A DNA stretch of 64,000 bases from Trichoplax adhaerens (GCF_000150275.1 NW_002060962.1:434001-498000), one strand, 5' to 3'. Positions 1-41,540 are shown, counted from the stretch's first letter. Notes: generated by a model not told the origin, from the sequence alone. Numbers and translations are program-made.

Positions 1-3000
1 TTCCATCTACGAGACTGTTTTGTGTTCCTTGAGAAAAAATAGACAGAACTACTGGAGTGTTACATCAAGTTTGATCTATTTTTAGTAATTATATTTATAC
101 AAAAAATGTATCCGAATAAGGACTACCGTGGAAAAATATTAAATCAAGTCAGATCGGACAAATATGGTAGACTAGAGAAAAAACCTATGTCCTAATAGTA
201 TTTCAGAAGCTAGGCGCAGACTTTCTTGTTAAGTATACCTAACTAATGGAACTTTGATTTTTAGCATGCTAATCTATGATTTGGGCCGTTTTTCCTATTT
301 AAACGTTGTCCTCGATAGTTTGATACGATTAAAATAATCATTGATAAGTATTACTAAATGGAACTAGATTACTTGATATATGAAGTAGATTGCAATTCAG
401 TAACTGATTTGAGTAAAAAGTCATAGCAAATCATGATGTGCTTAATATTAATTCGAGAACTCTTTTTTGCTGCAATCATAGCATGTCAAAAATTTTGTAT
501 ATATTCAGGTCGGTACATGAAGTATTGTACAGCTATACTGCTAATATCCTTAAAATTAACTTCAGGATAGGCTTTGTGGAATAAATGCCATTATAGAATT
601 AAAGTTATGTCAGCTCTAGTTGTCGAACAGTATTCCATTACCTTCTTTTCTTCTGGAGTTTATGTAGCTATAAGAAATAGGTAGGGAAATTATGACGTGG
701 TCTTTTCGACTATACAGCAAAGGTATGCCTAATTTTAATAGGGCGGGACGCATATTAACGAAATATAACAAAACTGGCTGATTTGGAAGTTACGTTACTG
801 TATATGTTCTATGATTTTAGCTGCCTGATTACACGTACGATTGGCATGAATTGTATGTACTTATACCTATAAATTTAAATAGTTGTAAAGTACACTATTA
901 TAAAACTCGAATTAATTTTTTCGAATATAGCAGCAGCAAAAATATTCAAAATTGTTTTTATATCATGGACTTTAAGTCACATTTACGTTCGTTACGAGGT
1001 CGCTATATTTGTATCTGATGTCATCATTAAGTGATATACGATAGCTACAAACATAATTTTAAACTGGTCATGATTGTACCGTAAATTTTGCATGCTGCAT
1101 GGATAGTTTAAAGAAATGTAATGATATATTTCTAGTATCTGATCTGTAAAAGGATATTTAAGGATGATTTTGGCAGTCATTTAAACTAGTAGTTAGAGAA
1201 GTTGTGCCCTTAAAGAAGGTCTGTGGTATGAATGCAGCAAAGCGCCATAATTTAATTTGGATATTTGCTTACTGAAGTTTATTTGCAGTATTTATCGTAA
1301 CCAACATCATCAATTCATCAGATTATGTTTAAAGTTATTGTTATGGTGACTTGTAACTTTTCAACACATAAATTTAATCGGATAAACTAAAATGATCAAT
1401 AAGAAGCTTTAAAACTTTAAATACAAATGGAATTTACGATACCAAATCTGCCTGTAAAGACCACTTTATAGTTTAAACTGTACATTGAATCCGGTAATGT
1501 TATAGCAAATAGGCAGTATGCGTTTCTTTATTAGAAATTATGACTAGCCCAATTGCATACAAATGAAGTTATTGAATAGCCTTATTACATTAATGACTTA
1601 CCTATCATAGATAAAACTTCCCCAAAGTGACATTAAATGCTTACTAATTCTTTCTTCATGTTCAGTATAATTTAATTTTAAGTTATTGGGTTTAAGTAAT
1701 GGATAACCGAATACATAGGGAATTTCCATAGAATGAGCCACGCCATAATAGCTTGGAAAATAAGTATCACTTTCAGTTCGGTAAGCAAAAACGTACATAT
1801 AAGTAGTAACATAACTAGAATAAAGATTCGCTGTTTCAACAATGGGTTCAGCATAGTAATAATCATTGTATAATTTCTCATATTCAGCACGATTACTAAA
1901 TAATGACGTTTTATTTGTCCAGTCTGTGTATTTATAGATCATGGCTGATAAAGTGACGTTATTGAAATTGGAAAATTGTGCGACTATATTAGTTTTAAAA
2001 GCAGCTCTTGATAGCCCCTTGGTGATATTGGGTAAGGGGGCTAAATACTTGGAACCATCGTTCATATTGCTACCCAGCATAATTTGAACCTTGTTAAATT
2101 GGCCTGAAGAAAGGAGTACCTTAGGATCGTCAGGGATAAATTGGCCGTCAATAACAGGCGTAAAAGCTTGAGGAAATTGAGATAAAATAGCTTCTTGCTG
2201 TTGTGATATTGTACTGATTGATAGAGATTGTAAACATTCAATCGTTAAATTTAATGTATTACGGCTGCAATTAGTAGCGCTTGTAAATTGTTGAAAAATA
2301 ATTTGAGCTTGATTTTTAGTCTTGATAGCGTGGGGTGAGAGTGGTGTACCACTTTGTAGAATGGCAGATGTAAATAATGATCCACTGCTTGGAATAACGG
2401 TGTGTAAACCTACTGAAATTGCTCCAGCTGAACTGCCAACAATCCCAATATCATTACTTCTACCACCAAATCGAACAATATTGTCCTTGATCCATGTTAA
2501 AGCTAATTGTTGATCACGTAAGGCGAGATTAGCTGGAATTTCACTATCAGTATTGCTATCTTGTCCTGAAGTTAAGAAGCCTAAAGCTCCTAACCTATAA
2601 TTAACAGTAACAATCACCATCTCTTCTGTACTTGCTAAAGCAGAAGGATCCCACAGTGATCCACTACCGCAATTAAAATCGCCGTTATGAAACCATACCA
2701 AGACAGATTTATTGCCAGCTACATTAGGGATAGGAGTATAAATATTCAAGTACAAGCAGTCTTCACTGATAGGTTGGCTATTGAGGAGTTCCTTATTATA
2801 GTCTAGACAGTTCCATTTTGAGGAATATTGCGGGCACGATGATTTATAATATGTCGCATTGTATATGCCTTGCCAATTCTGTGTCCACGGCAAGGCTGGT
2901 TTAAATCTCAAATTATTGGTTGGTGGTTGAGCATAGCGAATGCCAAGGAATGAATGAATATCGCCATTTAAGATATGGCTGACTTTGCCTTGTACTAGGC

Positions 3001-3100
3001 CATGATTTGTAACGACAAAAGAAGTCGTACTAGCAAGATTTGATTTATTCAAGACTAGTATCAAGAATAGGGTTAAGGCTAAATTGTATCTATTCATCAT
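1..3100 (-). CDS. Carboxyl/cholinesterase-family protein CCE1. Exon 1 is 3100-1602; a putative exon 2 starts at 27 and runs off the window.
   Basis: Signal peptide; FLGIRYAQPP, SEDCLYLNIY and VTVNYRLG motifs; nucleophile GSSAG, acid GSNMNDG, His GVAHSME. Phase-2 donor AG|GTAAGT at 1601. Candidate acceptor ttttttctcaag at 28 gives in-frame RNTKQSRRW, but this exon is tentative. Confidence 0.9.
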
Positions 3101-4385
3101 TGAGGAGAACTTTAAAATTTAAAAATCTATGGAAACAAATGTAGTTACTGTCTGCGAATATTGGCGACTGTGCTTTAAGATTTTTAAGATTTAAGTTTTT
3201 CTTGAACGGGCAAAAGGTTAAAAATTATAACTTGAAAATATTTTTGTTCAGTCCGATATTTTTTCTTGGATATGTCCTACCAATCGCGATAACAGAATAA
3301 ACAGAAGGCAAGACTTGTACAGTATAATAGAGATCAATCCCGATCATAAGGCCATCGAAATTAATAAAAATCAGTAATGTAAATGGATTACAATTGGTTG
3401 TAGATTTTTACTGAGGGTAATTTATTCTGACTAGGGAAAAAGAAAATGATTTTTTGGGGGGGAATCTCAAAAAATGAATAGATCAGAACATAAATTACCT
3501 TGTAGCTTCTGGCTTGACCTCTATATCAATTCTGAATAGCTAAATATCAGCGTTTCGAGTAAGGTATTAATAACAGAGGATTACAACTGGACTAGTCATA
3601 TAAGATTGGTCCCAAATAAATCATCGATCTTATAACCTGAAATTAATGATGAGACTAAAGGCAATATTTCCAACTTTATGCCCGGTTGCGTCAATTTTGT
3701 TGGTCAGCGCCTGCTATTTAGAATGGACAATAAATGTTTGTAGGCCGAAAGTACTGAAATTGAATTATTGGCAGTTATATATAGTCTTCTACAGTTTAAT
3801 GCTATTTGAAAGTCATCTACAGTTAAGCTTTTAGTAGAATAGAGAGACAAGGAGATGATAGCACCACTTTCAATTGGTTCCATGGTAAATAATACGCGTA
3901 TACAAAAGGTTTTTAAAGTTTTATCAATCTGCACTAAAATGATGGATGCCTTTTTTAAGAAAAGTTTTATTCCTTTGTTCTTTTATTACTTATACTCTAA
4001 CTCTTTTAGATCTAAAACAAAAATAACCAGTTTCTAAAGGAAATTTAGTTGTCAATCTGATCTCTCAATAACATTCAATTCTTAGACGTTATTGAAAGAA
4101 GACGTTTCTCTATTCAATTTTATATCATGAATGTTATGATTACTTACTGTAGAAGAAGGCATGTTTCCTATTCACTTGCCTTAAGAAATCATATCAAGTA
4201 ACATCAAATTACGTATAAACGACTTTAGAATTATTTTACAAAGAATCAATCAATAAATTAATAAGATTAACGTCGTCATCCTTAACGAATAGCCTAATAA
4301 TATTCTTAATGGAAGAAGTAAATGTTTACTTACTTTCTTATGCTTTGAATACCAAAAATACCTACAAAATATTGACATAGATAAA

Positions 4386-4708
4386 TAACAGACTATCAGC
4401 CACAATGATAGCGATATCTTTCTACTTTGAACTTGTCCGTAGGTATAGTTATCTTTAATAGAAGTTTAAGATATCATCGATGTATAATTTATGATCACCA
4501 ATGTTGGCTATAACTAAGTTTAAGGTTAATAACATGTGCTAAATGATTAACAGTCTATAAGCCACAATGATAGCGATATCTTTCTACTTTTGAGCTTGTC
4601 GGTAGGTATAGCTATCTTTAATGGAGGTTTCAGATATCCTTTATGTATAATTGATGATTACTAATGGTGGTTACAACTAAGTTTAAAGTTAATGACACGT
4701 GCTAAATG
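4386..4708. repeat. Tandem duplication, 2 copies of ~162 bp
   Basis: gccacaatgatagcgatatctttctacttt...gtgctaaatg occurs at ~4399 and ~4561 with scattered substitutions. Confidence 0.9.
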
Positions 4709-6342
4709 TTGGATATAATTTTTAAATTTGATCATGGTGATGTGTCATGCTATCTATATTATTCTGCATTGGAAAATTTCTTCAGAATGATCTGGTTATA
4801 AGTTCAATGTCCAAAATATTGATATACGAGTCATGTAAAAATTATCAATGTTAAAGCTAGCTATACTCTGATATTAGATAATGTATAAGAGTATATGCTG
4901 GATGCCCGTATACATCCTTAGTTGCATTGTATACTCTAATTCACATCTTGCATGGAGAATATTTTACTTTATGACATAATCTTTAATTCATCCATCCGCA
5001 GAATTTTCTTGACTGTTAACGTAAGTGAAGTACGTCTTCATCTTTATCTACTTATATAATATGTGGAAATATAATTTTTTATAAAAATTTCGAAACTATT
5101 TAATCATGATATTCTCTACTGAATATCTTTGATACGATCGTGGGCCAGAGAGTAAAATGTAGTCATAATTTCCAATATTATCATTACTTTGAATATACTG
5201 TATAATTATTTATTTGCATCTATTTCGTAATAGCAGAGCTTTTTGTATGCTATAACAAATAAATTAATTGAAGAATGATTGGTAACTAGTTAGCAATATC
5301 TATATTCTGCATACATAAACTCGCTGAGAAGCGTAGAAAAGTGAAGAAGTATTTTGAACTGGTACGATTACCTTGATATTAAATGAATTCCATTCTCTTT
5401 CAGTTATGAAATAATACTATGGAGAGATTGAATTAGAATGATCCATTTTTGCTTCAGTGGAGGAAAAACATCATGAAGGAAATATGAATCATCAACGAAT
5501 CGATCGGCTATCATTATTGACGTTATATTATACGCGTATGGCGAGATTTTAATAGTGAGAAAGCTGTGCAGTTGAAAAACTGCACAACCACTGGAAATAC
5601 GACGTTCAGTAATAATGAATTTCTACTCAGTTTCTCGACTGATTTATATACAGTAAATCTTATAGATATTATTGATATCGCAATTAACGCTTGAGTCAGA
5701 GTTTAGCCAACATTTTACAGCATCTTTAGCAGGCTTTGCTTGAGTAAAAGTCCATTTTCTTGCGTTAGTGCATGAACTACTAGAAAGAAACTTTGTAGTA
5801 GTCCCGGGATTAGAGTTTAGGCAACATTTTATCAGGACGGCTACCATGGGCTACTCAACTAAGAATTCTCTCTCAAAAAGCCGCACTATCAACATTTCAC
5901 TTCTATACACAATTCATCCCACCAAATCCTTGTGTATTTTTAGTATCATTAGTAGTGGGTAAAATTTTAAACTCAAGTTAAAACTGAAGTTTAAAATTTT
6001 ACCTCTACTACTGCTTGGAAGTGAAAATCTTTCGAGCACCATTTGCATTTTGAGGGAGAATTCTTAGTAGAGTAGTGATTGTACAACGCATACGTCTAGT
6101 AGAGCACAGGATATAGACTACACTAGTTCTCGACAGTACAGTAGTACTGTGAGCGAGGATCGCGTTCGATCGTCGTCGGACAGGACGAGACACTGGACGG
6201 TGGGTAGGCGACTACCTGACGGGTGGACGGAAGAGTGGACGCGTACATCAATTCATCAACCAACTCCAGGAGAGAGCGATTGGGAAGCCATCAACTGCCT
6301 TCGTCTAGCTTGATAGCAGTGGAGACATTCGATGCATTCATC

Positions 6343-9300: not shown

Positions 9301-10147
9301 GATCAGTAATAAACCGGAACCCAATGATTTCAACTGTTCTTAAGCTTTCTATCAACTTCTATTTCAATTAGTCCCGGACCAAATTCACCAATTGCTTGGG
9401 TAAGAAAATGTATCAAACTATTGGTGCCAGATGAGGGGCCATCTAGATCGAAAATATTAACTGGACTAAACTTTTATGGCAATGATTATTCTACAACTGG
9501 AGGTGGACGTAAGTATTTGATACTATAAGTTGTTTGCATTATTTCCTTAAGCTTACCATGTGTACGATTTCTAAAGCCATCATAATGTATACGTTAATAT
9601 TTCGCTCATATTTAATCAAATTTCCTCTTGCGATATATTTCCATAGCCATCATAGGTCCAGGGTAAGTTAAACTGAAATCAACGACGACCCTGTTGTCAT
9701 CACTCGTATATACGTATGTACTGTAATATTGAACTACATGATGCTACTATCATCCTATGGTAGGTATATTGACATTTTAACTAAGAATAAGCCTAAAATA
9801 AAATGGAATTCAAAAATTGCTGAACATATAATAGAGTACAAGAAGCAGTAAGTAAATATATTTAACCAAGAAATAATATATAGCTGTTAAGTTGGGCTAG
9901 GAAATAACGAGTTAACTTATTTTTCATGTTGTAGCGGTGTCTCTCATTCCGTCTATTACCCATCGCTAAAGGTCGGTTTTTGCAATACCATAAATTGAGT
10001 TATACAAGAATTAAATAGCGAATAAACTATCTCACTTTACACTTTTAGTCAATACAAGCTCGCGTGGATCTTGCTAAGAAATTAGGAACTGGTATTTCAA
10101 TTTGGGAATTGGGCCAAGGATTAGATTTTTTCTACGATTTGTTGTAA
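6343..10147 (+). CDS. CHID1: Chitinase domain-containing protein 1 (GH18-like, SI-CLP), multi-exon
   Basis: Spliced exons give the signal peptide [17 protein letters not shown], then ILGYVTP|[66 protein letters not shown], and the C-terminus [18 protein letters not shown], all typical of CHID1. Confidence 0.95.
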
Positions 10148-10695: not shown

Positions 10696-12775
10696 CTATA
10701 ACTCATCTGATGGCCTAGGCGTATCTACTCGTGTGGTTTCTTTAATTTTTTTCGGCTTTGGTAGTATTACTTTCGTTTCTTTGGAATCTTTACTAGTTGG
10801 CGGGTATTCATAAAACTCTTCAATAAATTCTTCCTCGAAGACTGTTGGTTCTTGGAGTGCTTCCGTTAGTATTGGTATCATACTATTCCAGAATGCAACG
10901 TTATTCGCTCGCCTTCGTTGTCGCAATTCTACGTTTTCACCAATATAGTAATAGAATTGTGTCTTGTTATCGTACGGTAGCCATTCATTTTCAAGCGAGG
11001 GAAAAGCCGGTTTTCTACAAACAGAGAATTTAACTCATAAACTTTAATCAAATTTTATCCTTTAGTAGATGAGCACTAACTATATATGATACGTAGTAAC
11101 ATGCAATTTTATTAATTAGATCATAGTTCAAACTGCTAGGGCAGATCGCTATAGTCTTCAAGAATAAAAATTAATGTCATCCCTAACAAGCTATTTTGTA
11201 GGGTTCACACTGCTACTATCGAGTCCGTAAATATTCGCATTCAACTTACCCCGCTTTAATAAAATTACCCCATAAATTCATCTTTAATTTACTGACAATT
11301 TTATCTTTGAAAGAATATTTATCTCGAATGTGAAATGGCTGCTCGAATGGGTAACCAAATAAATACGTTAATTCCATAGTTTTAGCAACACCTTGCTCAG
11401 GTTTAAAATAATCTGACTCTTTGGTACGAAAATCAAAGTGGTATTGATACGTAGTTACTCCAAACTTCGAAAATTGATTAGCAGCATATGCAGCCGGGGC
11501 AATAGCATAAGCATCAGATAGACAAGCAAACAAGCTTTCCCGATATTGAGTACGATTATAAGGATGGTAATGATCTTTATACTGGAACTTAATTGCCTCT
11601 CTTATTGGATCTGCATATTGACTAAAGATGATATCAATGGATTTCTGGTAAACTTTCTCATCGATACCGCCATCACTAATAAACTTATTAATTTCTTGCA
11701 AATAGTATAGACCTTCATCGGAAACCGTACCGATCATGACCTCATCCAAATGGAATTCTCCTGCTTCCATTTCCATCTTAGTATCATTTTCGAACATATT
11801 TTTATGATTTACTAAATTGAAAGGCATAAAATGCTTCAGTAAAAGTGTGCTTTGGGCTGCCATGATACGGTCAGTAGATTTCGACATTAAACATTCTAAT
11901 ATGACTGATTTGGTGCTATTAGGACAATTTAATTCAGTCAGCATCGTATTTAATATTTGTGTAGAACGATTTAGGTCTAAATGAGCACCGCCAGTGGTAA
12001 GTGCAGTGCCACTCATTAAGATTGCTCTAGAGAAATAGCGTTTATAATCTGGGTTATATTTTCTCATCAAGATATGATAGCCAACAGCCATAGCACCAGC
12101 AGAGTTACCGCCTAATGTTATTTGATTGGGATCACCACCATAATCGTCGATATTATTATATACCCACTTCAAGGCGACCATTTGGTCTAGGAAACCTAAG
12201 TTAGGCTCAATAACGATCTCACGATTTTTGTCATCGAAACCTGTTAAAAATCCAAACGCTCCTAATCGAAAATTGAAAGTTATCACAACTATATTCTGAT
12301 GCTGAGAAAGAACCTGACCTTGCCAATTAGCTCCGCTACTAAATTCGAGGGCTCCCTCGTGAACAAATAGAAAGACTGGTAATTTTCGATCGGTTTGAAT
12401 GTTCGGCGTGTAAATATTTAAATATAAGCAGTCTTCACTTTGTTGTGCTTCATCACTTCTTGGATCAACACGATGACTAAATGGGTAGTGATTGAAAATC
12501 TGAGGACAAGAAGGTTTAAATCGTGCTAAAACCATTTCCTTTTTCCATGCTACTATCGGCTTCGGTGGTTGAAAGCGTAAATCGCCAACAGGTGGTAAGG
12601 CATAAGGTACACCTAAAAATCGATAATGCGGCTTACCAAGGACTTCTGTTTTTATGCCCTTGATAGGGCCAAGCTTAGTTTCTAATGATACAGCTGAAAC
12701 CCAAGCATTATCAATGATTGATAGTAATATTAGTACTATCACGAAATTTAGATTTAACGATTTTAAAGATATCAT
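10696..12775 (-). CDS. CCE2, carboxylesterase-like; catalytic His replaced by Lys; C-terminal SDEL (exons 12775-11250, 11014-10696)
   Basis: Signal peptide, GNSAG, GTVSDEG, and GVAKTMEL where paralogs have GVxHSME. Donor GG|GTAAGT at 11249, acceptor tttgtag at 11015. Exon 2 reads KPAFPSLENEWLPY...VAFWN...RPSDEL*. Confidence 0.92.
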
Positions 12776-13968: not shown

Positions 13969-15934
13969 TTAATGTCTCTTTGGTTTACCCGATGATATAA
14001 TATTAAATACAAGATAGATTACACAACCAAGAAGGGCAATCGTCGATATCTTGTAAATGTTAAAGCCGGATGGATTAGATTGATTAGTAGAAGAATCGCC
14101 TTGTGAATCTTGCACTAATGCTTTAATTTTGGATTCCATGGCTGGTACAATTTCATTCCAGAAGACTACATCACCATGTCGATAGTGCTGATCTACTTGT
14201 GGATCTTTGGTGATGTTTAAATAGTAGCGATTATTGACCTCATATCTCGGCCAATTCTTGCTACCAGTGGGCTTGCTGCAACAAAAATAGAAGGAATAGG
14301 AGCGTTAATATTATTTTAACATGATGAAAAGTTGATTCAATAGTTCAACTAATTATAATTGATTACAGGGCATTAGATCAGTTCACTAAGCTATCAAAGG
14401 AATATTAGCGTAGTCGTGTTACTTACTTTCCTCGTGTAAATGAGCCCCACATTGCCATAATATTTTTACTAACATTAACATCATTCTCATCGTATTCATC
14501 CTTAAAATAACTCGGTTTGCGTATTGGATATCCAAAGATATAAGGTACTTCCATTTGATGGCTAGCTCCAGCATGGTCAGGATAATAAAACGAATCAGCC
14601 ACTCGTTGACTAAATATATACATGTATGTCGGTAAGCCATGTTCTGCAAATTTCTCGCCGCAATAAACAGCTGGTGACAGAAAATAGAAATCAGTCCACA
14701 ATAAATTGGAGTAATGTCTGATAAGGATTGGATTATTAGCATCGATAGGATCACTGTAACGATGAAGGATAGTTTCAAAAACTGGCTTAGAAACATAATC
14801 GATCGAGTTTTGTGCTACAGCATCGAATACTGGTCTGGATATTCCCTTATTAATATTAGGGATTAGCAAATTAAATAGCGTTCCATCGTCCTTTGTCAGA
14901 CCAAAGATCACATTGGCTTTGTTAATTTTACCTTTATCAAGTAAAATTTTTGGATCAGCAGGAATTGTTTTACCATCCACGATAGGTTTAAAGGGGCCCA
15001 TTTTTCTTTTAATTGCAGCCCATTGAGCTTCAATAATTTGATCGACGGATAATTTTTGCAAACAAGTGGTAATTTGGTGAGATTTTTGGGATTGGTTGCA
15101 TGCAGTATGATCTAGAAATCGCTGAAAGATCTCATTCGCTTCGGTATAGTCTTGATGATAGCATAAGTGCAATAACGGAGTACCACTTTGCAAAACAGCA
15201 CTACGGAATAAGCCTTGACTGGATGGTGATAATAGGTGAAATCCTATCGAAACAGCACCAGCTGAATTGCCAGCAATGGTTACTTTAGTTTTATCGCCAC
15301 CAAAGTGACGAATATTACGTTGTATCCATTTTAAGGCTATGTTTTGATCAAGTTGGCCATTATTAGCTGGCAAGATATCACTATTTTTCTCATTTCGAGC
15401 TGTCATAAAACCTAAAGCGCCAAGGCGATAATTGATTGTCACTACTACAATATCTTCACGTGTTGATAATGTCTCGCCATGCCAATTCGCACCAGTTCCC
15501 ATAACGTAGCCACCGCCATGGATCCATACTAGGACAGGCAATAAGGGACTTTTAGAATCGACTTTAGGTGTATAGATATTTAAATAAAGGCAATCTTCGT
15601 TTTCTTTGCTTTCTGGTAATGATTTATCAAGACGATCATATATTTGTGGCACAACATAGGTCTGTGGGCAGGATGGGCTAAATTGGAGAGCATCACGAGT
15701 TGATCTCCATGATTTCTTCAATGGTATTGAATTCATAAATCTTAAGGAGCCGACTGGTGGCTCAGCATAAGGCACTCCGAGAAAGACATGGCATTGCTTA
15801 TCATCAACATTGTAAGTTTTACCCCGTACAGCTCCTTTATCCGTTTGTGCTACAACATAGCTGTCAGCACCATATGCAATATTGAGCTGATAGAAGATCA
15901 ATAATATTGTAGTAGAAGACAGTAGCCATTTCAT
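13969..15934 (-). CDS. CCE3, carboxylesterase with C-terminal TM and KPKRH tail (exons 15934-14427, 14275-13969)
   Basis: HGGG oxyanion loop, GNSAG, GLTKDDG, GASHQME. Donor AA|GTAAGT at 14426, acceptor ttgttgcag at 14276. Exon 2, read by hand because it is not in the ORF track: KPTGSKNWPRY...VFWN...ISTIALLGCVIYLVFNIISSGKPKRH*. Confidence 0.92.
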
Positions 15935-18709: not shown

Positions 18710-20569
18710 TTAAGATTTCATTGGACGATTGCGAATTTTAGCCACCATAATTCCTAAAATTAAGCTTAAAATTGCTAGGAAACAGGCTGCACCAAGTGTA
18801 ATCCATAATGCCAGACGATATGTATGCAATTCTTGGAGGAGTGGCGATAATTGAGTTGTTAATGGCAACTTAGTAGTAGGACTACTAGTTGTTGATATGG
18901 TAGCAACTGAAAGAGGTTGAGTAGCATTCAATTTTGGAATTAAATGATTCCAAAATCGCATGTTATTTGATCTTAAATGATCTCGAACGGCTGGGCTAGC
19001 AGTAAATACGTAATACTGAGAAGAGTTACCATAAAATCGTGGCCAAGCTATACCATCTAAATTGGGAGTATTAGGATCTCCGCTCCTCATGATATTCCCA
19101 AAGCGGGTCATCATATCTAGGGATACTTGGCGATCATCCAAGGTAAATTCATCTCTATCATAAGGTGGTTTCGAATATGGATAGCCAAAAACATAAGGTA
19201 TCTCCATGCTGTGTGTAACACCAGTTGCTGGTTGGAAATAACCCGATTTAACTGTCCTTTGTGAAAATTCAAAGACATATGTAGGAATACCATGGCGTGC
19301 ATATTGGGTAGCACAGTAGATATTAGGAGCTAGAAATAAGAAATCGGTGTACATTTCAATAGCTAATTTATAATTCCACGTAGGTGATGTCATATTTGCC
19401 CAATGGGTATATTGGAAGACAACAGCATCTTTTGCTTTTGGAGCAAAGTTACTAAACAAAAAATTGACCGCTCCGTCGAAATATTGTCGAGTAACTTTAA
19501 AATCGAATCCTGGTTGCAACATTAGGTATAAAGTTCCGTCATCTTTCGATGATCCAAAGGCTGTCGTAACGTTTAAAATTTTACCTTGATCGATTAGTTC
19601 TTTGGGATCACCAGGGATTAAGCCAAAATTGCCAGTTGGTTTAAAAGCACCCGTTGTCTCATATAAAATCCAATTTTGCTGTAATAAAATGGTAGCGTAA
19701 GGTAAACCTCTTAAACAATTCAAACTATCCTCCATGGATGTACGATTACACTTTGTCTTGTACGCTAATCGAGTAAAAATAGAAGTTGCTTCATCTATAT
19801 CAGGATAATAACCATTGGGCAATGTAACAGTGCCACTTTGTAAAATAACACTTTGAAATAATCCTTTATTGGATGGCATTAGCATTTGAAAATTGCAACT
19901 TACGCTTCCTGCTGAATCACCAGCAAGAGTTACCTTCGTCTTATCACCGCCAAAATTAGCAATATTATCTTGAACCCATTGCATTGCTAATCTTTGGTCG
20001 TGAAAACCTAGATTGGGCTCAACAACAGTAGTTCTAGTTTTGGGATCTATTGCCCCTAAGAAACCTAACGCTCCTAAACGATAATTAAAGGTAACAACAA
20101 CAACATTTTCTATTGCAGCCAAGGCATTTCCTTCCCAGAAACCACCTGCACCAAAGTAAAATCCTCCTTCATGAATCCATAGAAAAACTGGTAATTTTGC
20201 ATTCGTGTTTGTCGTTGGAGTATAAATATTCATAAAAAGACAATCTTCTGATTGTTGAGCGCCAGGGTGATCTCTCTCTAATCGGCTAAAATTACGTACA
20301 AAGATAGTTTGAGGGCAAGATGGACCAAAATTTGTTGCATTGAGAGGATTTGTCCAATGAGTTTTCATTAATGTCGTTGGGGCGAAACGTCTACCTCCAA
20401 TAGGTGGTTCTGCGTAAGGAATACCACGAAAAACATGCACCGCGGTACCATTATATTCAGTTTGGATGCCTTCGACTGGACCAGTTGCTGTTTGAGCAAT
20501 AGTTTGACCGACATTCCCCTGAATGAAATTAAGATAAATAAAAAAAAACAAACCGAGCAATTTCTTCAT
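18710..20569 (-). CDS. CCE4, carboxylesterase with intronless CDS, Ser/Thr stalk and TM (619 aa)
   Basis: Single ORF: signal peptide, GDSAG, GSSKDDG, GVTHSME, WPRF...FWN, Thr-rich stalk, TM LALWITLGAACFLAILSLILGIMVA, short basic tail. Confidence 0.95.
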   Translation of the reverse strand: MKKLLGLFFFIYLNFIQGNVGQTIAQTATGPVEGIQTEYNGTAVHVFRGIPYAEPPIGGRRFAPTTLMKTHWTNPLNATNFGPSCPQTIFVRNFSRLERDHPGAQQSEDCLFMNIYTPTTNTNAKLPVFLWIHEGGFYFGAGGFWEGNALAAIENVVVVTFNYRLGALGFLGAIDPKTRTTVVEPNLGFHDQRLAMQWVQDNIANFGGDKTKVTLAGDSAGSVSCNFQMLMPSNKGLFQSVILQSGTVTLPNGYYPDIDEATSIFTRLAYKTKCNRTSMEDSLNCLRGLPYATILLQQNWILYETTGAFKPTGNFGLIPGDPKELIDQGKILNVTTAFGSSKDDGTLYLMLQPGFDFKVTRQYFDGAVNFLFSNFAPKAKDAVVFQYTHWANMTSPTWNYKLAIEMYTDFLFLAPNIYCATQYARHGIPTYVFEFSQRTVKSGYFQPATGVTHSMEIPYVFGYPYSKPPYDRDEFTLDDRQVSLDMMTRFGNIMRSGDPNTPNLDGIAWPRFYGNSSQYYVFTASPAVRDHLRSNNMRFWNHLIPKLNATQPLSVATISTTSSPTTKLPLTTQLSPLLQELHTYRLALWITLGAACFLAILSLILGIMVAKIRNRPMKS

Positions 20570-23816: not shown

Positions 23817-25767
23817 TTAATCGATGCGTGAACACTGTTGTTGGTCTCGGTCACAATGAGATTTTGTTGATGCTGTCAAAGCAAGGCTATCGCATTTTTT
23901 AGCATAATCCTCGAGTTCTGGGATATATTTGTTCCAAAATGCGACTCGATTACCTAGGTAATGTTGACCTATAGTCAGTTTATCGTCAAGCTTTGCATAA
24001 GTCTGATATTGTTTGTCATAACGCGGCCATTGTATTGGTGATGCATCTGTAGTAGGCGTCCTAAGTATAGGATTATAACCATACATTTAACAAAATTAAC
24101 TGTAATGCATTCAATATACTAAAGAATGACACGGTATTCTACTGATTGATTATAAAAAAAGTAATCTTATATTTTTACTCAATTATATCTATTTATATAT
24201 CATTAAAAATAAGAACATAATTTGATCATGCTAAATGATTGTATCCTACTTTACAATTGTATCTTGTCTCGACATACCCATATTTGATAAAGTTTCCCCA
24301 AGTCTCCATCATTCTTCGCGATACTTTGACATCTTCATCCGTGAAATTGGCTAGAAAACTGGCCGGCTTATCAATTGGGTAGCCTACTACTTGTGGCATC
24401 TCCATAGTGTGAGTAACACCCAGGTATGAAGGGAAAATAAATGACAATTTGGTAGGAAAGGCAAATTCGAAATAATAAGTAGGGACACCATCAGATGCAT
24501 ACTGTTGAGCGCATTTATCAGCAGGTGCTGCAAAAAAGTAATCATTAAAGAGTTTGGTCGCCTCGTCTCGAACAGCTAAAGGATCGTTTTCTTTGATCCA
24601 ATTAGTATAACGAAATTTAATAGCAGATCTAGTTTGTTTACTGAATGCTTTAAAAAAAACATCTATTGAAGCGAAAAAATTCTCTGTTGATAGCCCTTTT
24701 TCGATATCTGGATAGCCACCCATTCTTACAAAAACCGAGCCATCATCTGATGTTGTCCCAATCATCGTAGGTACCTTTTCGTACTGTCCATTTTTAAGTA
24801 AAGTTTCAGGATTATCTGGCAAAAATTGATCATCAACAGCGACAGAAAAGCCAAATGGATAGACACCCATGGTTTTAAATTGAGCACCTAATAATTCTTG
24901 CATAGGTAGATCTTGAAGGCAAGCTACTGTTTCAGCTGTATTAGCTCGTGCACAATTAGAGTGTTTGACAGCTTCTTCAAATACTTTTCGTGGAGTGGTG
25001 AAGTCTGGATGGAAGAATTCCGGAAATTGTGGAGTACCACTATCCAAAATAGCTCTATGAATTAATCCTTTACTTCCAGGTGACATGGTATGTAATCCAA
25101 CTGACATAGCGCCAACTGAATTACCCGAAGCTGTAATTTTATTAGGATCGCCTCCAAATTGAGCGATATTCTCGCGAACCCATTGAAGAGCCAATCGTTG
25201 ATCATACAACCCCAGATTGGGTTCAATAACGTGTTTACCGTCGACTTTTTCACCTGGTGTCATAAACCCAAAAGCACCCAAGCGATAATTCATAGTTACA
25301 ACAATAATATTTTGATTGCTTGCAAGTACTTTACCTTGCCATCGTGATCCACTACCATAGAAATAAGCTCCACCATGGATAAAAACAAAAACAGGCAATT
25401 TTGATGTACTACTTGCACTAGGGGTCCAAACATTAATATAGAGACAATCTTCTCTAATTTGTCCATGTTTAGTGTCTTGACTGAGATCGGGAATTGGTAG
25501 ACCTTGTGGACAAGCATAAGGGAGAGATGTGGCATCAAATGGTTGTTTCCATACGGTTTCTATCGGTTGTGGAGGCTGAAATCTTAAAGAGCCAACAGGC
25601 GGTTGGGCAAAAGGAATGCCAAGATAGCCATAAACCGTTTTTCCTTCAACATTAAAATCGATACCGGCAACAGGGCCTTTATTAGTATGGACCATTTCAG
25701 CTGCTGATGCAATCGCTGAGGCTTGACACAGCAATAAAGATGTTACAAGAATGGCGATATTAACCAT
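23817..25767 (-). CDS. CCE5, secreted carboxylesterase with a Cys-containing tail (exons 25767-24278, 24060-23817)
   Basis: HGGA, GNSVG, GTTSDDG, GVTHTME. Donor GG|GTATGT at 24277, acceptor cttag at 24061. Exon 2 reads TPTTDASPIQWPRY...AFWN...CDRDQQQCSRID*, with no TM. Confidence 0.92.
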
Positions 25768-27744: not shown

Positions 27745-29860
27745 CTAGAATTTATGACTATTGGATATACTGGTGCCTTTGATACGATTATTGTTGGCTT
27801 GATGCAGCTTAAACAAAACTATGATTAAAGTGGTTATAAAAATTGCTGCAATAGCTGCTAAAACGTATGTAGCTATCATATACTCTCTGCGAACCATGCC
27901 GGACATTGCAGGATTGTTGGTGGTCATCATTGTCGTAGAAGGCGTAGTCATTCCTTTAGTCGGTGTCGGTGTCGGCTTTGTCGTTGGTGTGGGAACGGTA
28001 GTGCTGGGTACTCCCAGCTTTGGTAATAGCTTGTTCCAGAATGCAACACGATCAGAAAGATAATCCTTTCTAATTTCTGATTGATTGCTAATTTTAAAGT
28101 AGGATGCATTATTTGCATTATACATAGGCCACTGCGCAGCCGATGATGCCATTGTCGGTGTACTAAAATCGGTAAGTAAATCGTTGCAAAAAAATTGTAA
28201 AAAGTTATACAGTATATGAGTTGGTATCATTTAATATAAACACGTATACAACATATAGATTTAAATAATTTATGACAAATAATTAATTAATAATAAAGCC
28301 GTAGTAACATTATTCTTGAGAGTAAATCAATTGCGGTGATTACTATAGCTACAAGTAGGGATATTCAATGACTTACCCATGCTTAATAAAACTGCCCCAA
28401 ATTTGCATGATATCACGAGATACCGCAACATCTTCAGATGTGAAATTAGCTGAAAAACTGCTTGGCCTATTAATAGGATAACCCATTACATAAGGCACTT
28501 CCATTGTATGTGTAACACCCATATATGGAGGAAATGCAGTAGATAATTGAGTTCGAAATGCAAATTCGTAATAGTAAGTGGATACACCGTCAGCTGAATA
28601 TTTTCTTGCGCACTTGTCAGCTGGTGCCACAAAAAAAAAGTCATTGAATAACTTATTAATTTCGTCTCTGTTAGCAATTGGATCATTTTCTTTTGCATAT
28701 TTTGTATATTGATATTCGATAGCAGACCTTGATTGTTGGCTATATGCGGCAAAATAGCCGGCGATTGTACCCAGAAAGACAGCTCGTGGTAAACCTTGAC
28801 CAATATTTTGATACCGATTAACTTGTAAGAATATAGAGCCATCATCAGTGGTTGTGCCCAACATTGTATTCACTTTTTCATATTGTCCATTTTTTAACAG
28901 TGTCTCCGGGCTGTCAGGTAAAAATTGGCCTCCTGCAACAACTACAAATCCTAATGGATAAGTTGCCATCGTTGTTAATTGAGCTGTGAGTAACTCTTTC
29001 ATAGTAAGTGCTCGAAGACATGTTACAATTTGAGCTGCTGTCGAACGACTACAATTTGAAAGCTGGGCAACTTTTTGGAATACTATGTTTGGTATTTTAA
29101 AATCAACGTAATAGAATTGTGGCATAATAGGGGCACCACTCTCCATAATGATGCGATGAAATAAGCCTTTACTACCTTGGGACATTGTATGCAATCCTAC
29201 AGATACAGCACCAACAGAATTGCCTGCAATAGTTACATTTTGTGGATTACCGCCAAATTTGGCAATATTGTTACGAATCCACTTCAAAGCTAATTGTTGA
29301 TCGAGTAAGCCAAGATTTGGTTCAATAGGGTAATTGTCATTGACTTTAGATGTTGTCATAAAGCCGAAAGCACCTAATCGATAATTCATGGTAACTGTGA
29401 CGATATTTTGATTAGCAGATAGTACTTTGCCTTGCCATCTCGATCCACTACCGTAGTAATAAGCTCCGCCATGGATAAATACAAATACAGCAAGATTGGA
29501 GGCATTATTGGTTGTTGGTGTCCACACGTTCATATACAGACAGTCTTCGTTAACTTGACCTTGTTTCGTTTGTGAACTAAGATCAGGAATTGGTAACGCT
29601 TGGGGACAAGCATACGGCAATGTCGTTGTATTCTTAGTTTGTGTCCATGGTGTTTGAATCGGCTGAGGAGATTGAAATCTTAAATTACCTACTGGTGGTT
29701 GCGCGAAAGGGATACCGAGATATCCATAAACAGCTTTACCTTCAATATTATAATTTTTACTTTGAACTGGACCTTTATCGGTTTGTACGATATTAGCCCA
29801 AGAAAATATCGACAAAATTAAGACTGTTAGAAAGCAAAGATAAATTTTCTCCGCACCCAT
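27745..29860 (-). CDS. CCE6, carboxylesterase with Thr/Pro mucin-like stalk, TM and cytoplasmic tail (exons 29860-28377, 28162-27745)
   Basis: HGGA, GNSVG, GTTTDDG, GVTHTME; closest paralog of CCE5. Donor GG|GTAAGT at 28376, acceptor ttttag at 28163. PSTTVPTPTTKPTPTPT stalk, TM, tail ending SNSHKF*. Confidence 0.93.
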
Positions 29861-35185: not shown

Positions 35186-37384
35186 CTACAGGTTTTCATC
35201 TTCAGCTTTGGTATTATTTATTAAATGTGTCAAATTTTTGGATGGCCCCCGCCGGTAGCGGACTACACAGTATATTACTATGGCAATTGCAATGGCACAT
35301 AATAAACCAAACTGAACGTAAGTTCCAGTAATGTAGGCGGGATCGGCACATTGCTTTGGCGATGGAGTAAGCGGTGGAGTAAGTGGTGAAGTATTTTGAG
35401 TACACTTACTCGGTTGCTTTGTTAATTGTGGCCAGAATTGATTCCAAAATGCAACATAGTTTGCTCGTGGTGAGCTGTAGACCTGTGGAGCTAATGCTAC
35501 TTTTAGATAATTTCCAGTATTGGAATTGTACTTTGGCCATACGACGGGATTATTTGAGACTGGGTTTCTGAAAAAATTAAAGTAGAGCAGTATTAAATCA
35601 AAGTTAGCTAATCAATCGGGTTTTCATTAACTAAAATAATTTACTCTAATGAAGTTGCGATTAGCATTGTACTGTAAAAATTCTACCCTTAATTAACTTA
35701 TTAAATAATGAAGGCAAAGGCTTGATGATCAACAGTGATCGTTTCAATTTGTACTTCGATATAGATGTACGAGACTTTTTGTATTGTACTTAGTATCAAT
35801 AGAAAATGTGATAGATCATAGCTGTTTTAGTTTACACTAGTAACGATTAGGATTTGTTAATGTCTGAACTTAATACAGGGATTAAAGAGAAGACAATTTT
35901 GATTAATTAATTTAATAGATGACTTGCCCGTTATAGACGAAATTGGACCAATACTGAATCAAAGAATGGCTAATACGGAGGTCATTTGGTGAATATCTAC
36001 TATTGTCATTGGTCGGTTGACGAATGGGATAACCAAAAAGATAGCTGATCTCAGATCCAACCGGTATATACTTGGGCTTAAAAGCAAAATTGATGGAATC
36101 GTTGATAGGATAGCTAAATTGATACACGTACGATGAAATTCCTTGAGCAGCAAACTTCTTCAATGTAGAAACCAGTGGAGCTGTAACGATGTAATCGGAA
36201 TATAAGTATGATAATTGTTGCTGATTAGTGACAGGGGATGATTCGTTATTCCAATCTGTATAGCGATTTTCAATGGCAGATCTTGCAACAAGATTAGTGT
36301 AACTGAATAACCAATCAAGTTGAGTTATAAATTGCTGTCGTTGAATTCCACTACTCGAACCAGAAACAGGATTGGCCACACTTGCCATAACCTGAACCTG
36401 ACGATTAAATTGATTATTGTTTAAAGCCACTACAGGATCAGTTTGAATAATATTTCCATCGATAACAGCTTTAAACATGTTATCGTATGTTGAAGGAGTT
36501 AAAGATGATTGAACAGATAAAATGTTTGCAATAGGTAAATTGCGTAAACAGGATAGGATCGATTTTGCGGTCGTTTGTACACTACAATGAGATTTTTTGA
36601 GGAATTGTTGCATAGATTTATTGGTTGCATTTAAATTCGAATAATACATACGTGGCATGAGTGGAGATCCACTGACCAAGGCAATGCGTTGATATAAGCC
36701 ATGTTGTTGTGTTGAATTTAGAAATTGTAAACCAATTGAGAAGGCACCAGTGGATGTACCAGCTAAAGTGACTCGCCTAGGGTTACCACCAAAATTGGCA
36801 ATATTCTTTTGAATCCACTGTAAGGCCATGACCTGATCTAAGATGCCTAAATTAGGTGTAATGATCGATCGACCCATGGTATCAGTCCCTGTTAAATAGC
36901 CTAAAACTCCTTGACGAAAATCGAAGGTCACAACAATCAATTTGCCAGTGACGGCGAAAGCTTGACCATTGAATAACTCCGTATTCATCGAGGATGGAGA
37001 ATCACCATGAAGCCAAACAAGAACAGGTAAAGGATTATTTGACGATTGATTTGCTGGTACGTAAATATTCAAGTAAAGACAGTCTTCACTTTTGGTTGAA
37101 GTTGAAGAATCTGCAATACTGTGATAACATAACTTTGGTGTAGTCGTAGCTTGGCGTATTCCTGTCCATTTGGTAGGTTGTACAGGGCGATAAAATCGAA
37201 AATTTCTGACTGGCGGTTGAGCATAGGGTATGCCAAGAAAAGTAAAGCATGATTGATTACTATTGATAGGTGTAATGTTCCCTTTGATTTTTCCTGAATC
37301 AATTTGAACTGTCAAATCACTTTGAATGAAAGCATTATTACAGACTAGATTGATCAAGACGAGTGCCAATACAACGGTCTTCAT
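35186..37384 (-). CDS. CCE7, catalytically degenerate cholinesterase-like type I membrane protein (exons 37384-35928, 35567-35186; GC-AG intron)
   Basis: Oxyanion loop HGDSPSS, elbow GTSTG, acid-loop region deleted or altered, His region YIPVGSEI with no His. GG|GCAAGT at the conserved intron site, acceptor ttttcag at 35568. Exon 2 reads NPVSNNPVVWPKY...AFWN, Pro/Thr stalk, TM, tail ...KAEDENL*. Confidence 0.88.
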
Positions 37385-38545: not shown

Positions 38546-39269
38546 GGTCTCATTAAACACACTTTTCAATGCATTATCCAGAATATCTGGAGATATGTAG
38601 TGTACTGTAGGTTACTACGAGTACTGCATCCTGGTCTCATTAAATTTCAAGTAAGATAGCAATACTACAGCATTAGATAATTTCGCATTGGCAGCATCAC
38701 ACTGCCCTGAAATAACGTTATACTGTATCACTCCAAAAATGAATATGCAGTACTTTAGTACAGTACAATGCACATCCACTCATACACAATATTCATCCTG
38801 CCTGATTAATTCATTTATTTATCAATCATCCGATTAAGTTAACTAAGCATCTTTTACTGTACAGTATAGCAATGGATACGAATTTTCAAACATTTCTGAT
38901 TGTAATGTTACTGTTACTGTTAGTCACAATATTGAAGGCTGTGCGCATTTAATATGCCTGTAAAACTTATCAACATAATTTATCTTAGCAAAGAGATGCC
39001 ACAGAGTATCCTTTTGCAAACCAAATACAGTACTATAAATAAGATTGAAAAGCCTTGAAAGAGTTGCTCGAGTTTGCAGCTTGTAATATACAAAATTGAC
39101 AATAACCGCAAAAATGTTGCCATTACGAATTGCTGATTCGGATGTGCAGAATGTAGCCTAATCTAGTTACAATTAACATTGTATACTACTGTACTACATT
39201 TCCAATACTGTATTGACTTAATACGAGTATTACAGCAAAATAGAGTAGAATTTATCATTATACCACGTA

Positions 39270-41540
39270 TTACAAAGCATTGTTGTCATTTCCTGCAGAT
39301 GCAAGTCTTGCTATATTTCGAGAAGGCCATTTTCGATATTTAAAAATAAAAAATATAATCATAGCTGCAGCTAAAGTACATAATACCGCAAATTGTATGT
39401 ATGTAGCAAGCATGTATGAACGGCTAACACATGTTTCTGGCATGGTCGAATTTTCTGGCGATGAATTATTAACAGAGGCTAATTGAGGCCATAAATCATT
39501 CCAAAAAGCTACATAGTCAGCACGAGGTGCCTTCTGGACACCAAGAGTTGAAGCTAGTTGCAAACATCTTTTACTTTTAGAGTCATACCTAGGCCATGTA
39601 ATACCATTGACTGGCGTGGATGTGGGATTTCTAGACATTAAAGCAACGTCATGTTGATTTATTAGTACCACCTAGATAAATTTGCGAGAACAACATCTCC
39701 GGTGATAAAACACCTGCCTATTCAATCTATCCTATTTTCTAGCAATGATATATTCGTTGACAGTAAAGAGCTTTACAGTACTGTAGTATACAGTATTACT
39801 ATTAATGATTATAATCAAGATAGGGCATTGAGCACGGTCATCACTATAGAGTAAAATCTAAATAATCAATGGAAAGATTGTTCAGTAATTTGTTCGCTAT
39901 TCATTATAGTAAATACGCGTACATCTAGTAGTCCCTTCATCGTTATCGTACTTTGAACTTTGATGATTTAAACATGTGACAACCTCATCATTCATTACAG
40001 CCTAAACTTACCCGGATGCAACGAAATTTGACCATAGATTAATCATTACTCTGCTTAATTTCATATCCTCGCTGGTGTACGAATTACCCTTATGAGACAA
40101 ATTTAACATTGGGTAACCAAAAATATACGGTATTTCCATAGAATGTACAACGCCAACATGAGGTGGGAAGTAGCCAGAGTTGATTATTTTATGATTGAAT
40201 TGGTAAAAATAGGTTACGATGCCATTATCAGACATTTTGTTTAACGTGTATGCCATTGGTGAATTAAATATTCTGTCGGTGAAAAGATCCGATGTCATTC
40301 GCAAGTTATTGGCAGGAGACGTTACGTTTGACCAAGCAGTGTAACGATAGATGACGACTGATCGAGCAGCTTGGCTTGCATTGGGAAATTCTCGATTGAT
40401 ATAATTGAAGAACATCTGGCGAGGCATACCATTATTTAATTGCGGAATTAGAGCAATGAATAAGTCACCTTCATTTTTTAACACTCCACCAATTACCTTG
40501 ACGTTTTTATTTTTCAAAGTACCAGCCTTTAACAGCCTTTTTGGATCGTCGCTAATTAACGTCCCGTCGACGACGATTCTGTAAGCTTCGCTAAGGCCCA
40601 AGATAGTACTAGTTTTACCTTGAATAGAAATAATATCGCCAATAGGCAGATTACGTAAACAGCTTAGAATGTTTTGATTTGAGGCAGATATGTCGCAGGT
40701 TGTACGAGACAGAAAATTTTTGTAAGCTTGGCTAGTTGATTTAAGATCTGGATAATATAACGTAGGCAGTACAGGTGAGCCCCCAGCCATGATGCCTTGT
40801 CTATAAAGCGTCTCTTGCATTGGTGTTGTTGTAATAAACAGACCAACCGATGCAGCGCCTGCAGAGTGACCGCTAATGGTAACACGCTGAGGATCTCCAC
40901 CAAATTGGGCTATATTTTGTTGTACCCAACGAAATACTGCTTGTTGATCATGCAAGCCAAGGTTTGGAGTTATAATAGGCATACCATTACGATCCATTCC
41001 AGTCAAAAAACCGAGCACACCACGACGGTAGTCAAAGGTTACTACAACCATATTACCTAAAGTGGCCAACGCTTCACCATTCCACCAGGCCGCATTGCCC
41101 ATTCCTAGTGAGCCACTATGGATCCATACCAGCACAGGTAGCTTGGATGCTCCTACCTTAGGTGTGAAAACATTTAAATACAGGCAGTCTTCATTTTGGC
41201 TTCCTATTACGTCCGTGAAATTGGCAAAATTGAGACTATAGCAAAGATTGGGTACAGTCTTGGCTTGGAGCACATTGTTCCATTTCATCACCGGCGTGGG
41301 TAGATGAAATCGTAACTGGCCCACAGGTGGGTTTGCATAAGGTATTCCTAAGAAAATAGCGCAATCTTTATTTTCTACTTGGACCATGGTACCTTCTACT
41401 TTACCTGCGTTTGTATCTACTGTGACAGATCCATTTTCGGCCGCAGAACCGCTCATAAAGAAAGCGATTAAAGTAATGATCAGTGTCAATTGCATATTTT
41501 GAACTGGTTTCATCGGATTGCCTAAGGACCTTTTATCCAT
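39270..41540 (-). CDS. CCE8, carboxylesterase with TM and cytoplasmic tail (exons 41540-40012, 39630-39270); the true start may be a downstream ATG
   Basis: GHSAG, GVLKNEG, GVVHSME (intact Ser-Glu-His). Donor GG|GTAAGT at 40011, acceptor tctag at 39631. Exon 2 reads NPTSTPVNGITWPRY...FWN, TM, tail ...GNDNNAL*. Confidence 0.92.

Follow-up and report, generated by a model that had tools for sequence, protein, structure and literature searches.

Probable re-addressing of single duplicates through the last exon in a placozoan family of esterase genes

Introduction

The carboxyl/cholinesterase (CCE) fold is a textbook case of reuse, and it serves in detoxifying enzymes of the endoplasmic reticulum (ER), in secreted or anchored neurotransmitter hydrolases and in non-catalytic adhesion molecules. 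This reuse, which vertebrates divide among separate gene families, seems to have evolved again on a small scale within one clade of a nerveless animal, the placozoan Trichoplax adhaerens. The genes concerned belong to a tandem array of CCE genes, part of which lies in a stretch of 64,000 nucleotides (C1395:434001-498000; GCF_000150275.1 NW_002060962.1), hereafter the window.

Four groups of described systems come closest. In BCHE and ACHE, a long catalytic exon is combined with C-terminal exons that decide anchoring and oligomerisation; BCHE has four exons, of which exon 2 is the long one (PMC5891924). The mammalian carboxylesterases CES1 and CES2 carry a signal peptide, a COesterase domain and a C-terminal HXEL motif. 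Neuroligin, gliotactin and neurotactin are type-I membrane proteins with an esterase domain, an O-glycosylated stalk, a transmembrane (TM) segment and a cytosolic tail; according to a review, neuroligins are present in Cnidaria and not listed in Placozoa (PMC10084454). Finally, tandem expansions that produced head-to-tail arrays with diversified active sites are represented by the insect esterases, the mammalian CES cluster and the CEST genes of Caenorhabditis elegans. Several nematode CEST enzymes are catalytically active and membrane-anchored.

The account of the Trichoplax genes that we consider likely is that they form a placozoan-specific family with an ancestral type-I anchored form, in which changes of the last exon re-addressed single duplicates to the ER or to secretion.

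Extent of the family

Eight open reading frames (ORFs) of 490-619 amino acids (aa), all on the minus strand, were found in the window, and each of them matches the COesterase profile PF00135 with E-values of 1e-104 to 1e-133, well over the 27-bit cut-off, which places all eight in the type-B carboxylesterase/lipase family. An earlier reading of this DNA, made without database searches (the sequence-only reading), had described eight co-oriented esterase paralogs at positions 1-41540 and had judged an early-branching animal to be their probable source. The eight genes are indeed there, numbered here from CCE1 (lowest coordinate) to CCE8 (highest), and the animal is T. adhaerens, but the array is larger than was thought. 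The region C1395:381-475 kb contains 16 family genes and one pseudogene, every one on the minus strand and head-to-tail. The genes of the window are the right (distal) half of this array, whereas U1-U8 and the pseudogene continue beyond position 1 to C1395:381 kb; the last exon of CCE1 also falls outside the window. The pseudogene, located between U6 and U7 (C1395:418342-418985), is a fragmented COesterase sequence with several stop codons.

PF00135 has 31 matches across the 105.6-Mb genome. Besides the array, five dispersed paralogs, named V1-V4 and X1, were identified, four on C1414 and one on C1385, and the family comprises at least 21 genes in T. adhaerens. Identity between paralogs is 28-41%, except for CCE5 and CCE6 (63%). 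The array genes are already in public databases, as uncharacterised or similarity-named proteins: exon 1 of CCE2 is identical to the model TRIADDRAFT_61115 (P0122), and a second gene shares 99% identity with a protein of Trichoplax sp. H2. A description of the array was not found in the literature searched.

A common intron and a last exon that completes the fold

In seven of the eight window genes, exon 1 ends with W-[GS]-x-F-x-x-x and a codon split after its second base (phase 2), so that split codon and donor fall at one homologous position, as the sequence-only reading had stated. The donor is GTAAGT in CCE1, CCE2, CCE3, CCE6 and CCE8, GTATGT in CCE5 and GCAAGT in CCE7. Acceptors that are in frame and have polypyrimidine tracts are located 151-381 nt downstream in CCE2, CCE3, CCE5, CCE6, CCE7 and CCE8, and all six exons open with the W-P-x-Y ... 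F-W-N core attributed to them earlier. The intron of CCE1 is 1920 nt long, and its terminal exon thus starts at window position -319. A phase-2 donor at W-x-x-F-x-x-x-G is present in all paralogs but CCE4, including the dispersed V1-V4 and X1. CCE4 is colinear through the intron site and uninterrupted; since its ortholog in another placozoan (P0002, 620 aa, 72% identity) is also intronless, the loss of this intron is old. The features of the eight genes are as follows (window coordinates unless stated otherwise; the residues of the catalytic triad are Ser, Asp or Glu, and His).

CCE1 exon 1: 1602..3100, minus strand; codes for the signal peptide and the esterase domain (499 codons + 2 nt), with Ser, Asp and His all present; oxyanion loop HNGD
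CCE1 terminal exon: C1395:433681-433108 (window -319 to -892), minus strand; outside the window; 117-aa S/T/P stalk, TM segment, KLKKSKTAVA
CCE2 exon 1: 11250..12775, minus strand; Ser (GNSAG) and Glu retained, Lys instead of the catalytic His; oxyanion loop HEGA
CCE2 intron: 11015..11249, minus strand; 235 nt, GT..AG, phase 2; RNA-supported
CCE2 terminal exon: 10696..11014, minus strand; fold end W-L-P-Y ... F-W-N, acidic then basic linker, TM segment absent, SDEL and stop
CCE3 exon 1, coding part: 14427..15934, minus strand; ATG at 15934; full Ser/Asp/His triad; oxyanion loop HGGG
CCE3 intron: 14276..14426, minus strand; 151 nt, GT..AG, phase 2; RNA-supported
CCE3 terminal exon: 13969..14275, minus strand; end of the fold, linker of 35 aa without mucin-like composition, TM segment, cytosolic SGKPKRH and stop
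CCE4: 18710..20569, minus strand; 619 aa, no intron; signal peptide, then the esterase fold (up to residue 549), a disordered stalk (550-575), a TM helix and KIRNRPMKS
CCE5 exon 1: 24278..25767, minus strand; ATG at 25767, matching the Trichoplax sp. H2 model; full triad; GNSVG
CCE5 terminal exon: 23817..24060, minus strand; preceded by a 217-nt intron (GTATGT..AG); end of the fold plus 37 aa that include three Cys; TM segment and retention motif absent
CCE6 exon 1: 28377..29860, minus strand; full triad; 63% identity to CCE5
CCE6 terminal exon: 27745..28162, minus strand; 214-nt intron; fold end, 55-aa stalk (49% S/T/P), TM segment with YMIATYVLA, 21-aa tail; predicted splice
CCE7 exon 1: 35928..37384, minus strand; Ser retained (GTSTG), acid residue and His missing; oxyanion loop HGDS
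CCE7 terminal exon: 35186..35567, minus strand; behind a 360-nt intron whose donor is of the GC type (GCAAGT); end of the fold, S/T/P stalk that contains Cys, TM segment, 24-aa tail ending ENL; predicted splice
CCE8 exon 1: 40012..41540, minus strand; Ser, Glu and His present; oxyanion loop HSGS; sister of CCE7
CCE8 terminal exon: 39270..39630, minus strand; 381-nt intron; fold end, 33-aa stalk, TM segment, 23-aa tail ending NAL; predicted splice

The exon joins were compared on window positions 10650-16000, which contain CCE2 and CCE3, with contigs from four public runs of RNA type, each from a different study. The CCE2 joint 11014|11250 occurs in contigs of all four runs, with exactly 235 nt skipped, and the CCE3 joint 14275|14427 in contigs of three, with exactly 151 nt skipped; the skipped segments have CT..AC ends on the plus strand, which correspond to GT..AG on the minus strand. 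As these contigs match the predicted introns exactly, the terminal exons of both genes are used as predicted. Public models contain the same joins for CCE2 (P0122, 614 aa, ending SDEL) and for CCE5 (P0121, 577 aa, from H2, ending in the Cys tail). Unlike in ACHE, a single joint per gene is seen in the RNA contigs, which indicates that the variety of tails comes from gene duplication and not from alternative splicing.

CCE3 transcripts leave the genome at 15970 and resume in a 5' leader at window position 16132, which delimits a 161-nt intron (15971-16131) in the 5' untranslated region (UTR); in-frame stops in this leader set the start codon at 15934. A trans-spliced origin of the leader was rejected, because it maps in cis at 16132. 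One CCE2 contig (run X5) extends about 1 kb past 10650, as a long 3' UTR of this gene, or read-through, might explain.

CCE4 also indicates where the exon boundary falls in the protein. Its Pfam match reaches profile position 515, whereas the exon-1 pieces of the other genes end near 472, leaving profile positions 473-515 to the last exon. In an AlphaFold2 model of CCE4 (pLDDT 91, pTM 0.85), the boundary position coincides with the end of helix 477-496. The stretch 498-549 is made up of two strands (518-530) and a C-terminal helix (534-549) with a pLDDT above 90, residues 554-574 are disordered, and residues 576-613 are helical. The best structural matches of the model in a Foldseek search are human BChE (TM-score 0.91), AChE and neuroligin-4. 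The last exon had been taken for a variable address module. It does carry recognisable sorting signals, but going by the Pfam match and the model it is not free-standing, as the esterase fold takes its C-terminal helix and two of its strands from the first ~44 residues of this exon. The phase-2 intron, probably ancestral to the family, divides an exon of about 1.5 kb from a last exon that encodes the final two strands, the C-terminal helix and the part that would decide localisation.

A single placozoan clade

A profile of the array was used to extract 427 esterase domains, from the 21 T. adhaerens paralogs, two word-indexed searches and one exhaustive profile search that covered 1.84 billion cluster representatives. 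In a FastTree phylogeny of these domains, the node that unites the 21 paralogs (support 99) takes in no more than 17 further sequences, all of them scoring at placozoan level. A more careful tree was built with IQ-TREE (LG+C20+F+G4; 84 rows and 490 columns, with all multi-domain fusions and most unnamed representatives left out). It contains a placozoan clade of 30 rows, namely the 21 paralogs and nine orthologs from other placozoans, supported at 100/99, and the paralogs are not spread among ancient subfamilies. Seven bilaterian neuroligins group at 100/99 without CCE7 or any other placozoan row, a separation that rests on bootstrap and SH-aLRT support. The vertebrate cholinesterases group at 100/93, and both this clade and the wider cholinesterase-like clade exclude every placozoan row. 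The placozoan clade itself belongs to a larger group without internal resolution, which also includes the neuroligins, insect esterases and a number of CES-like invertebrate genes.

Within the family, CCE3 groups with V2-V4 of C1414 at 95/83. One-to-one orthologs in other placozoans were found for CCE2, CCE4, CCE6 and CCE8 (67-79% identity), and also for U1, U8 and V4. Together with the 28-41% identity between paralogs, these orthologs point to an old expansion and not to a recent local burst, and most duplications appear to predate the split from the other placozoan lineages.

Anchors and sorting signals

All eight window genes encode a hydrophobic N-terminal leader, and all members would enter the secretory pathway through this signal peptide. 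What follows the F-W-N core differs among genes, and every tail type listed by the sequence-only reading for CCE2 to CCE8 was seen. CCE4, CCE6, CCE7 and CCE8 have stalks of 33-55 aa rich in Ser, Thr and Pro (36-49% S/T/P), a TM segment (KD19 2.5-2.8) and tails of 9-24 aa; in CCE1 the stalk reaches 117 aa (46% S/T/P) and precedes a TM segment and a 10-aa tail. A stalk and a TM segment are present in 14 paralogs (U1-U4, U6-U8, X1, V1, CCE1, CCE4, CCE6, CCE7 and CCE8), which represent every major branch. The tails had been said to diverge completely; this is contradicted by a juxtamembrane/TM motif common to the stalk-TM paralogs and resembling Y-x-[IL]-A-T-[YF]-x-L-A-G. Moreover, CCE4 and its ortholog are 80% identical in the TM segment, against 62% in the stalk and 76% in the enzyme domain. 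The presence of stalk and TM segment in every major branch, the shared motif and the conservation of the TM segment in the CCE4 pair all argue that the anchor is homologous across the family and ancestral, and that it was not reinvented. The ancestral and commonest product would be a type-I membrane protein that consists of the esterase domain, a disordered S/T/P-rich stalk (probably O-glycosylated), a single TM helix and, on the cytosolic side, a short basic tail; it would act as an ecto-esterase at the cell surface, a form that CCE1, CCE4, CCE6, CCE7 and CCE8 may have retained. Changes limited to the last exon would then have re-addressed individual duplicates.

Among the members without an anchor, CCE2 has a tail with no hydrophobic segment that ends in SDEL, and CCE5 has no TM segment and three Cys in its last 37 aa. 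By comparison with the rest of the family, both are best read as derived soluble forms; a relic TM segment was sought downstream of their stop codons, where only AT-rich noise was found. CCE5 is the sister of the TM-anchored CCE6. It has probably lost its anchor and gained no retention signal, and should be secreted; speculatively, its Cys-rich end could form disulfide-linked oligomers. In the upstream half of the array, the terminal exon of U5 (C1395:407970-408130) codes for nothing beyond the end of the fold (...FFNNLLNKNLR); in the adjacent U4, at 79% identity, a stalk and a TM segment follow. U5 looks like a recent loss of the anchor.

Two types of ER signals are predicted. The ER-lumen pattern of PROSITE (PS00014) is [KRHQSA]-[DENQ]-E-L. 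CCE2 fits retrieval to the lumen, with its leader, its lack of a TM segment and a C-terminal SDEL in a transcribed exon; after loss of stalk and TM segment, it would have become an ER-lumen resident held by the KDEL receptor, genes for which (PF00810) occur at three loci in the genome. V2 (C1414:12805000-12806400, minus strand) may have taken the same route independently: it has the phase-2 intron of the family, about 1.1 kb long, and a terminal exon without a TM segment that ends in KQEL. The second type is the di-lysine pattern of COPI retrieval, for which a type-I TM protein needs one Lys at position -3 from the C-terminus and another at -4 or -5. In the CCE3/V clade, KXKXX closes all three proteins that have a TM segment (CCE3 KPKRH, V3 KEKQS and V4 KNKQD), against none of the 14 other TM members. 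This contrast, which draws on genes beyond the window, is the best argument that the tails are genuine addresses, and it suggests that selection acts on addressing. Their linkers lack mucin-like composition (35 aa and 26% S/T/P in CCE3), and these proteins are predicted to be retained in the ER membrane through COPI. The CCE3/V sub-clade therefore appears, from its C-termini, to be committed to the ER, with a switch of the retention mechanism in V2, and CCE2 seems to have gained SDEL independently of it.

V1 (C1414:12590755-12592281) is the most divergent member, with an end branch of 1.83 and a catalytic His that is apparently absent. An acidic linker unlike mucin is followed in this protein by a TM segment and by a tail of 28 aa rich in Arg and Lys.

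A bolder extension of this scheme is offered tentatively, and we regard it as somewhat doubtful. ER residency may itself be a selected trait, kept while its mechanism changed from the KXKXX of CCE3, V3 and V4 to the soluble KQEL form of V2, with the xDEL-ending pseudo-enzyme CCE2 as an independent case; the changes of tail may have been eased by an intron of the same ancient origin as that of the vertebrate cholinesterase genes. The exon 2/3 boundary of BCHE, reportedly described by Arpagaus et al. in 1990, is said to fall after W-A-N-F-A-K-Y-G, which is the placozoan intron position; this is a lead only. If the intron were shared, the plan of a catalytic exon followed by an anchoring exon would be older than the split between placozoans and bilaterians.

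Catalytic residues

The nucleophile Ser is kept in all eight window genes. The acid residue is Asp in five of them (CCE1, CCE3, CCE4, CCE5 and CCE6), Glu in CCE2 and CCE8, and lost in CCE7; the catalytic His is replaced by Lys in CCE2 and absent in CCE7, the two genes from which it had been reported missing. CCE1, CCE3, CCE4, CCE5, CCE6 and CCE8 consequently have the complete triad that, together with a G-x-S-x-G elbow, an active member would need, with Glu as the acid residue in CCE8. The oxyanion loop is altered in CCE1, CCE2, CCE4, CCE7 and CCE8, and catalytic residues are also lost in U8, upstream in the array.

Two orthologs of CCE2 from other placozoans (67% identity) keep the His-to-Lys replacement, the Ser, the altered oxyanion loop and intact frames of about 490 codons. 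CCE2 looks like a maintained ER-resident pseudo-enzyme, or else a non-canonical enzyme. The idea that it is a decaying pseudogene was rejected, as it is transcribed and its orthologs keep both frame and Lys; the same idea was rejected for CCE7. With neither acid residue nor His, CCE7 could at most bind a ligand, and the adhesion-like label that it had been given reflects its lost catalytic residues and no other feature.

When the genes are aligned with AChE of a bird, BChE of a frog and a snake and the cholinesterase of amphioxus, the choline-binding Trp of the E-M-W-N-P-N omega loop is found in none of the eight window genes, and the Glu of G-E-S-A-G is replaced in all of them (S, N, N, D, N, N, T, H). 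As to function, ester digestion or detoxification at the feeding epithelium would be our guess.

Alternative explanations

The gene structures, the splices of CCE2 and CCE3, the motifs, the clade and the conservation in orthologs are established, and every localisation, glycosylation, and catalytic activity or inactivity is inferred from them. Several further points weigh against the proposed re-addressing of single duplicates. The sorting motifs are just 4-5 residues long, the cytosolic tail of CCE3 measures only about 7 residues (membrane-proximal di-lysine signals would be compatible with a tail this short), and the KQEL exon of V2 is without RNA support. The evidence for SDEL, KXKXX and the Cys tail comes from Trichoplax; a protein search with the CCE2 terminal-exon peptide gave no match and a metagenome scan with CCE2 exon 1 no relative, and both blanks are uninformative. 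The splices of CCE1, CCE6, CCE7 and CCE8 are predicted from the sequence. That of CCE7 requires a rare GC donor and is based on phase and on tail homology to CCE8, and the only public model of this gene (P0287) is spliced otherwise: an internal GT donor (after ...AAQGISS) is joined to the same acceptor, 35567, and the TM segment is then skipped. Because the contiguous CCE7 tail is homologous to that of CCE8, P0287 is considered an ab initio artefact, which probably avoids the GC donor. Finally, the tree is without cnidarian, sponge and ctenophore sequences and without vertebrate CES, CEL, gliotactin and neurotactin, so that "placozoan-specific" here means "not nested in any sampled bilaterian subfamily".

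One alternative is that the tail motifs are due to chance, that SDEL, KQEL and KXKXX have no sorting role and that all members are surface or secreted proteins. The shortness of the motifs and the predicted nature of the localisations would fit this explanation, and Lys/Arg-rich juxtamembrane tails can yield a di-lysine by chance. However, KXKXX is found in every TM member of one clade and in none outside it, despite tails that cannot be aligned. The same clade is devoid of mucin-like stalks, and its one soluble member ends in an ER signal of the PROSITE type, KQEL. In addition, both proteins ending in xDEL or xQEL are those without a TM segment. An origin of the motifs by chance is thus unlikely.

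A local burst of eight genes is a second alternative, and a rather unlikely one. In this version of the sequence-only reading, a single local expansion would have used the last exon as a freely exchangeable address cassette and produced the ER-lumen, ER-membrane, secreted, surface and adhesion forms each independently. Several observations are in its favour: past F-W-N, the tails of most paralogs are hard to align, the intron lies directly before the tails, and the clade is lineage-specific. The last of these does uphold the part of the claim that concerned a single lineage, but the array has 16 genes, the family numbers at least 21 genes of like structure, and the low identities and the one-to-one placozoan orthologs indicate that the duplications are old, most of them older than the placozoan split. 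As for independent origins, the soluble and ER forms do appear derived, whereas the membrane form, with its homologous TM segments, would be ancestral. Lastly, a part of the fold is also encoded by the last exon, and no sign of exon exchange between genes was seen.

The third alternative, that each paralog descends from a different ancient subfamily (with CCE7 as a neuroligin ortholog, CCE2 as an ER esterase of the CES type and the others as true cholinesterases), is very improbable: public names such as "Cholinesterase" and "Acetylcholinesterase" and the top non-placozoan profile matches of the array, which are deuterostome cholinesterases, would agree with it, as would the best match of CCE7 among solved-structure sequences (neuroligin-4 at 220 bits, though with AChE at 210 and BChE at 205 this is not discriminating), but the placozoan rows are monophyletic, the neuroligin and vertebrate cholinesterase clades contain none of them, CCE7 keeps a nucleophile Ser that neuroligins lack, and the choline-binding Trp and the GESAG Glu are missing from all eight genes.

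Comparison with known families

The re-addressing scheme is best appreciated by comparison with the systems outlined above. BCHE and ACHE resemble the placozoan genes in their fold and in a long catalytic exon followed by sequence that decides anchoring. In the placozoan genes, however, the end of the fold and the tail share one exon, the variety is achieved by duplication instead of alternative splicing, and neither a T nor an H peptide is present. Since they also lack the choline-binding Trp and the GESAG Glu and fall outside the cholinesterase clade, none of the eight can be called a true cholinesterase.

CES1 and CES2 share with CCE2 and V2 the combination of signal peptide, COesterase domain and C-terminal xxEL (SDEL and KQEL, respectively). 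The position of CCE2 and V2 inside the placozoan clade implies an independent origin, and CCE2, in which Lys substitutes for the catalytic His as it does in its orthologs, probably does not act as a hydrolase.

The type-I members, with their stalk, TM segment and cytosolic tail, recall neuroligin, gliotactin and neurotactin, and catalytic residues are lost in CCE7 and U8. Nevertheless, they are not orthologs of neuroligins, and most placozoan members keep the full triad. CCE7 retains Ser at the position where neuroligins have Gly (G-x-G-x-G), and the placozoan tails, of 9-24 aa, contain no class-I PDZ ligand (CCE7 ends ENL). As CCE7 lies outside the neuroligin clade and keeps the Ser, it does not seem to be a neuroligin; its presumably dead site and type-I topology would be a convergent resemblance.

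Compared with other tandem CCE expansions, this family belongs to a separate clade in another phylum, and its TM anchor would be ancestral to the whole family, with ER and secreted forms derived. The nematode CEST enzymes (PMC12931606) are the nearest functional analogue known to us. The array does not represent a novel type of system: known counterparts exist for each of its forms, and CCE arrays restricted to one lineage are frequent. The changes would be limited to one exon and each step still has a living paralog, which would make the family a natural series for the gain and swap of sorting signals. A caution also follows for arguments on the pre-neural cholinergic and synaptic toolkit, as placozoan genes named "acetylcholinesterase" or neuroligin-like are probably neither.

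Neighbouring genes

Between CCE1 and CCE2, the gap of about 7.5 kb (window 3101-10650) contains no ORF longer than 90 aa. The array ends with CCE8, and the next gene (window 44047-45634, minus strand) encodes a ubiquitin C-terminal hydrolase of the UCH-L5 type, with the N- and C-terminal parts of Peptidase_C12 and the UCH_C domain each in separate exons. Further on lies a lipin gene (window 51714-57099, minus strand), with Lipin_N at 56854-57099 and LNS2 at 51714-51950.

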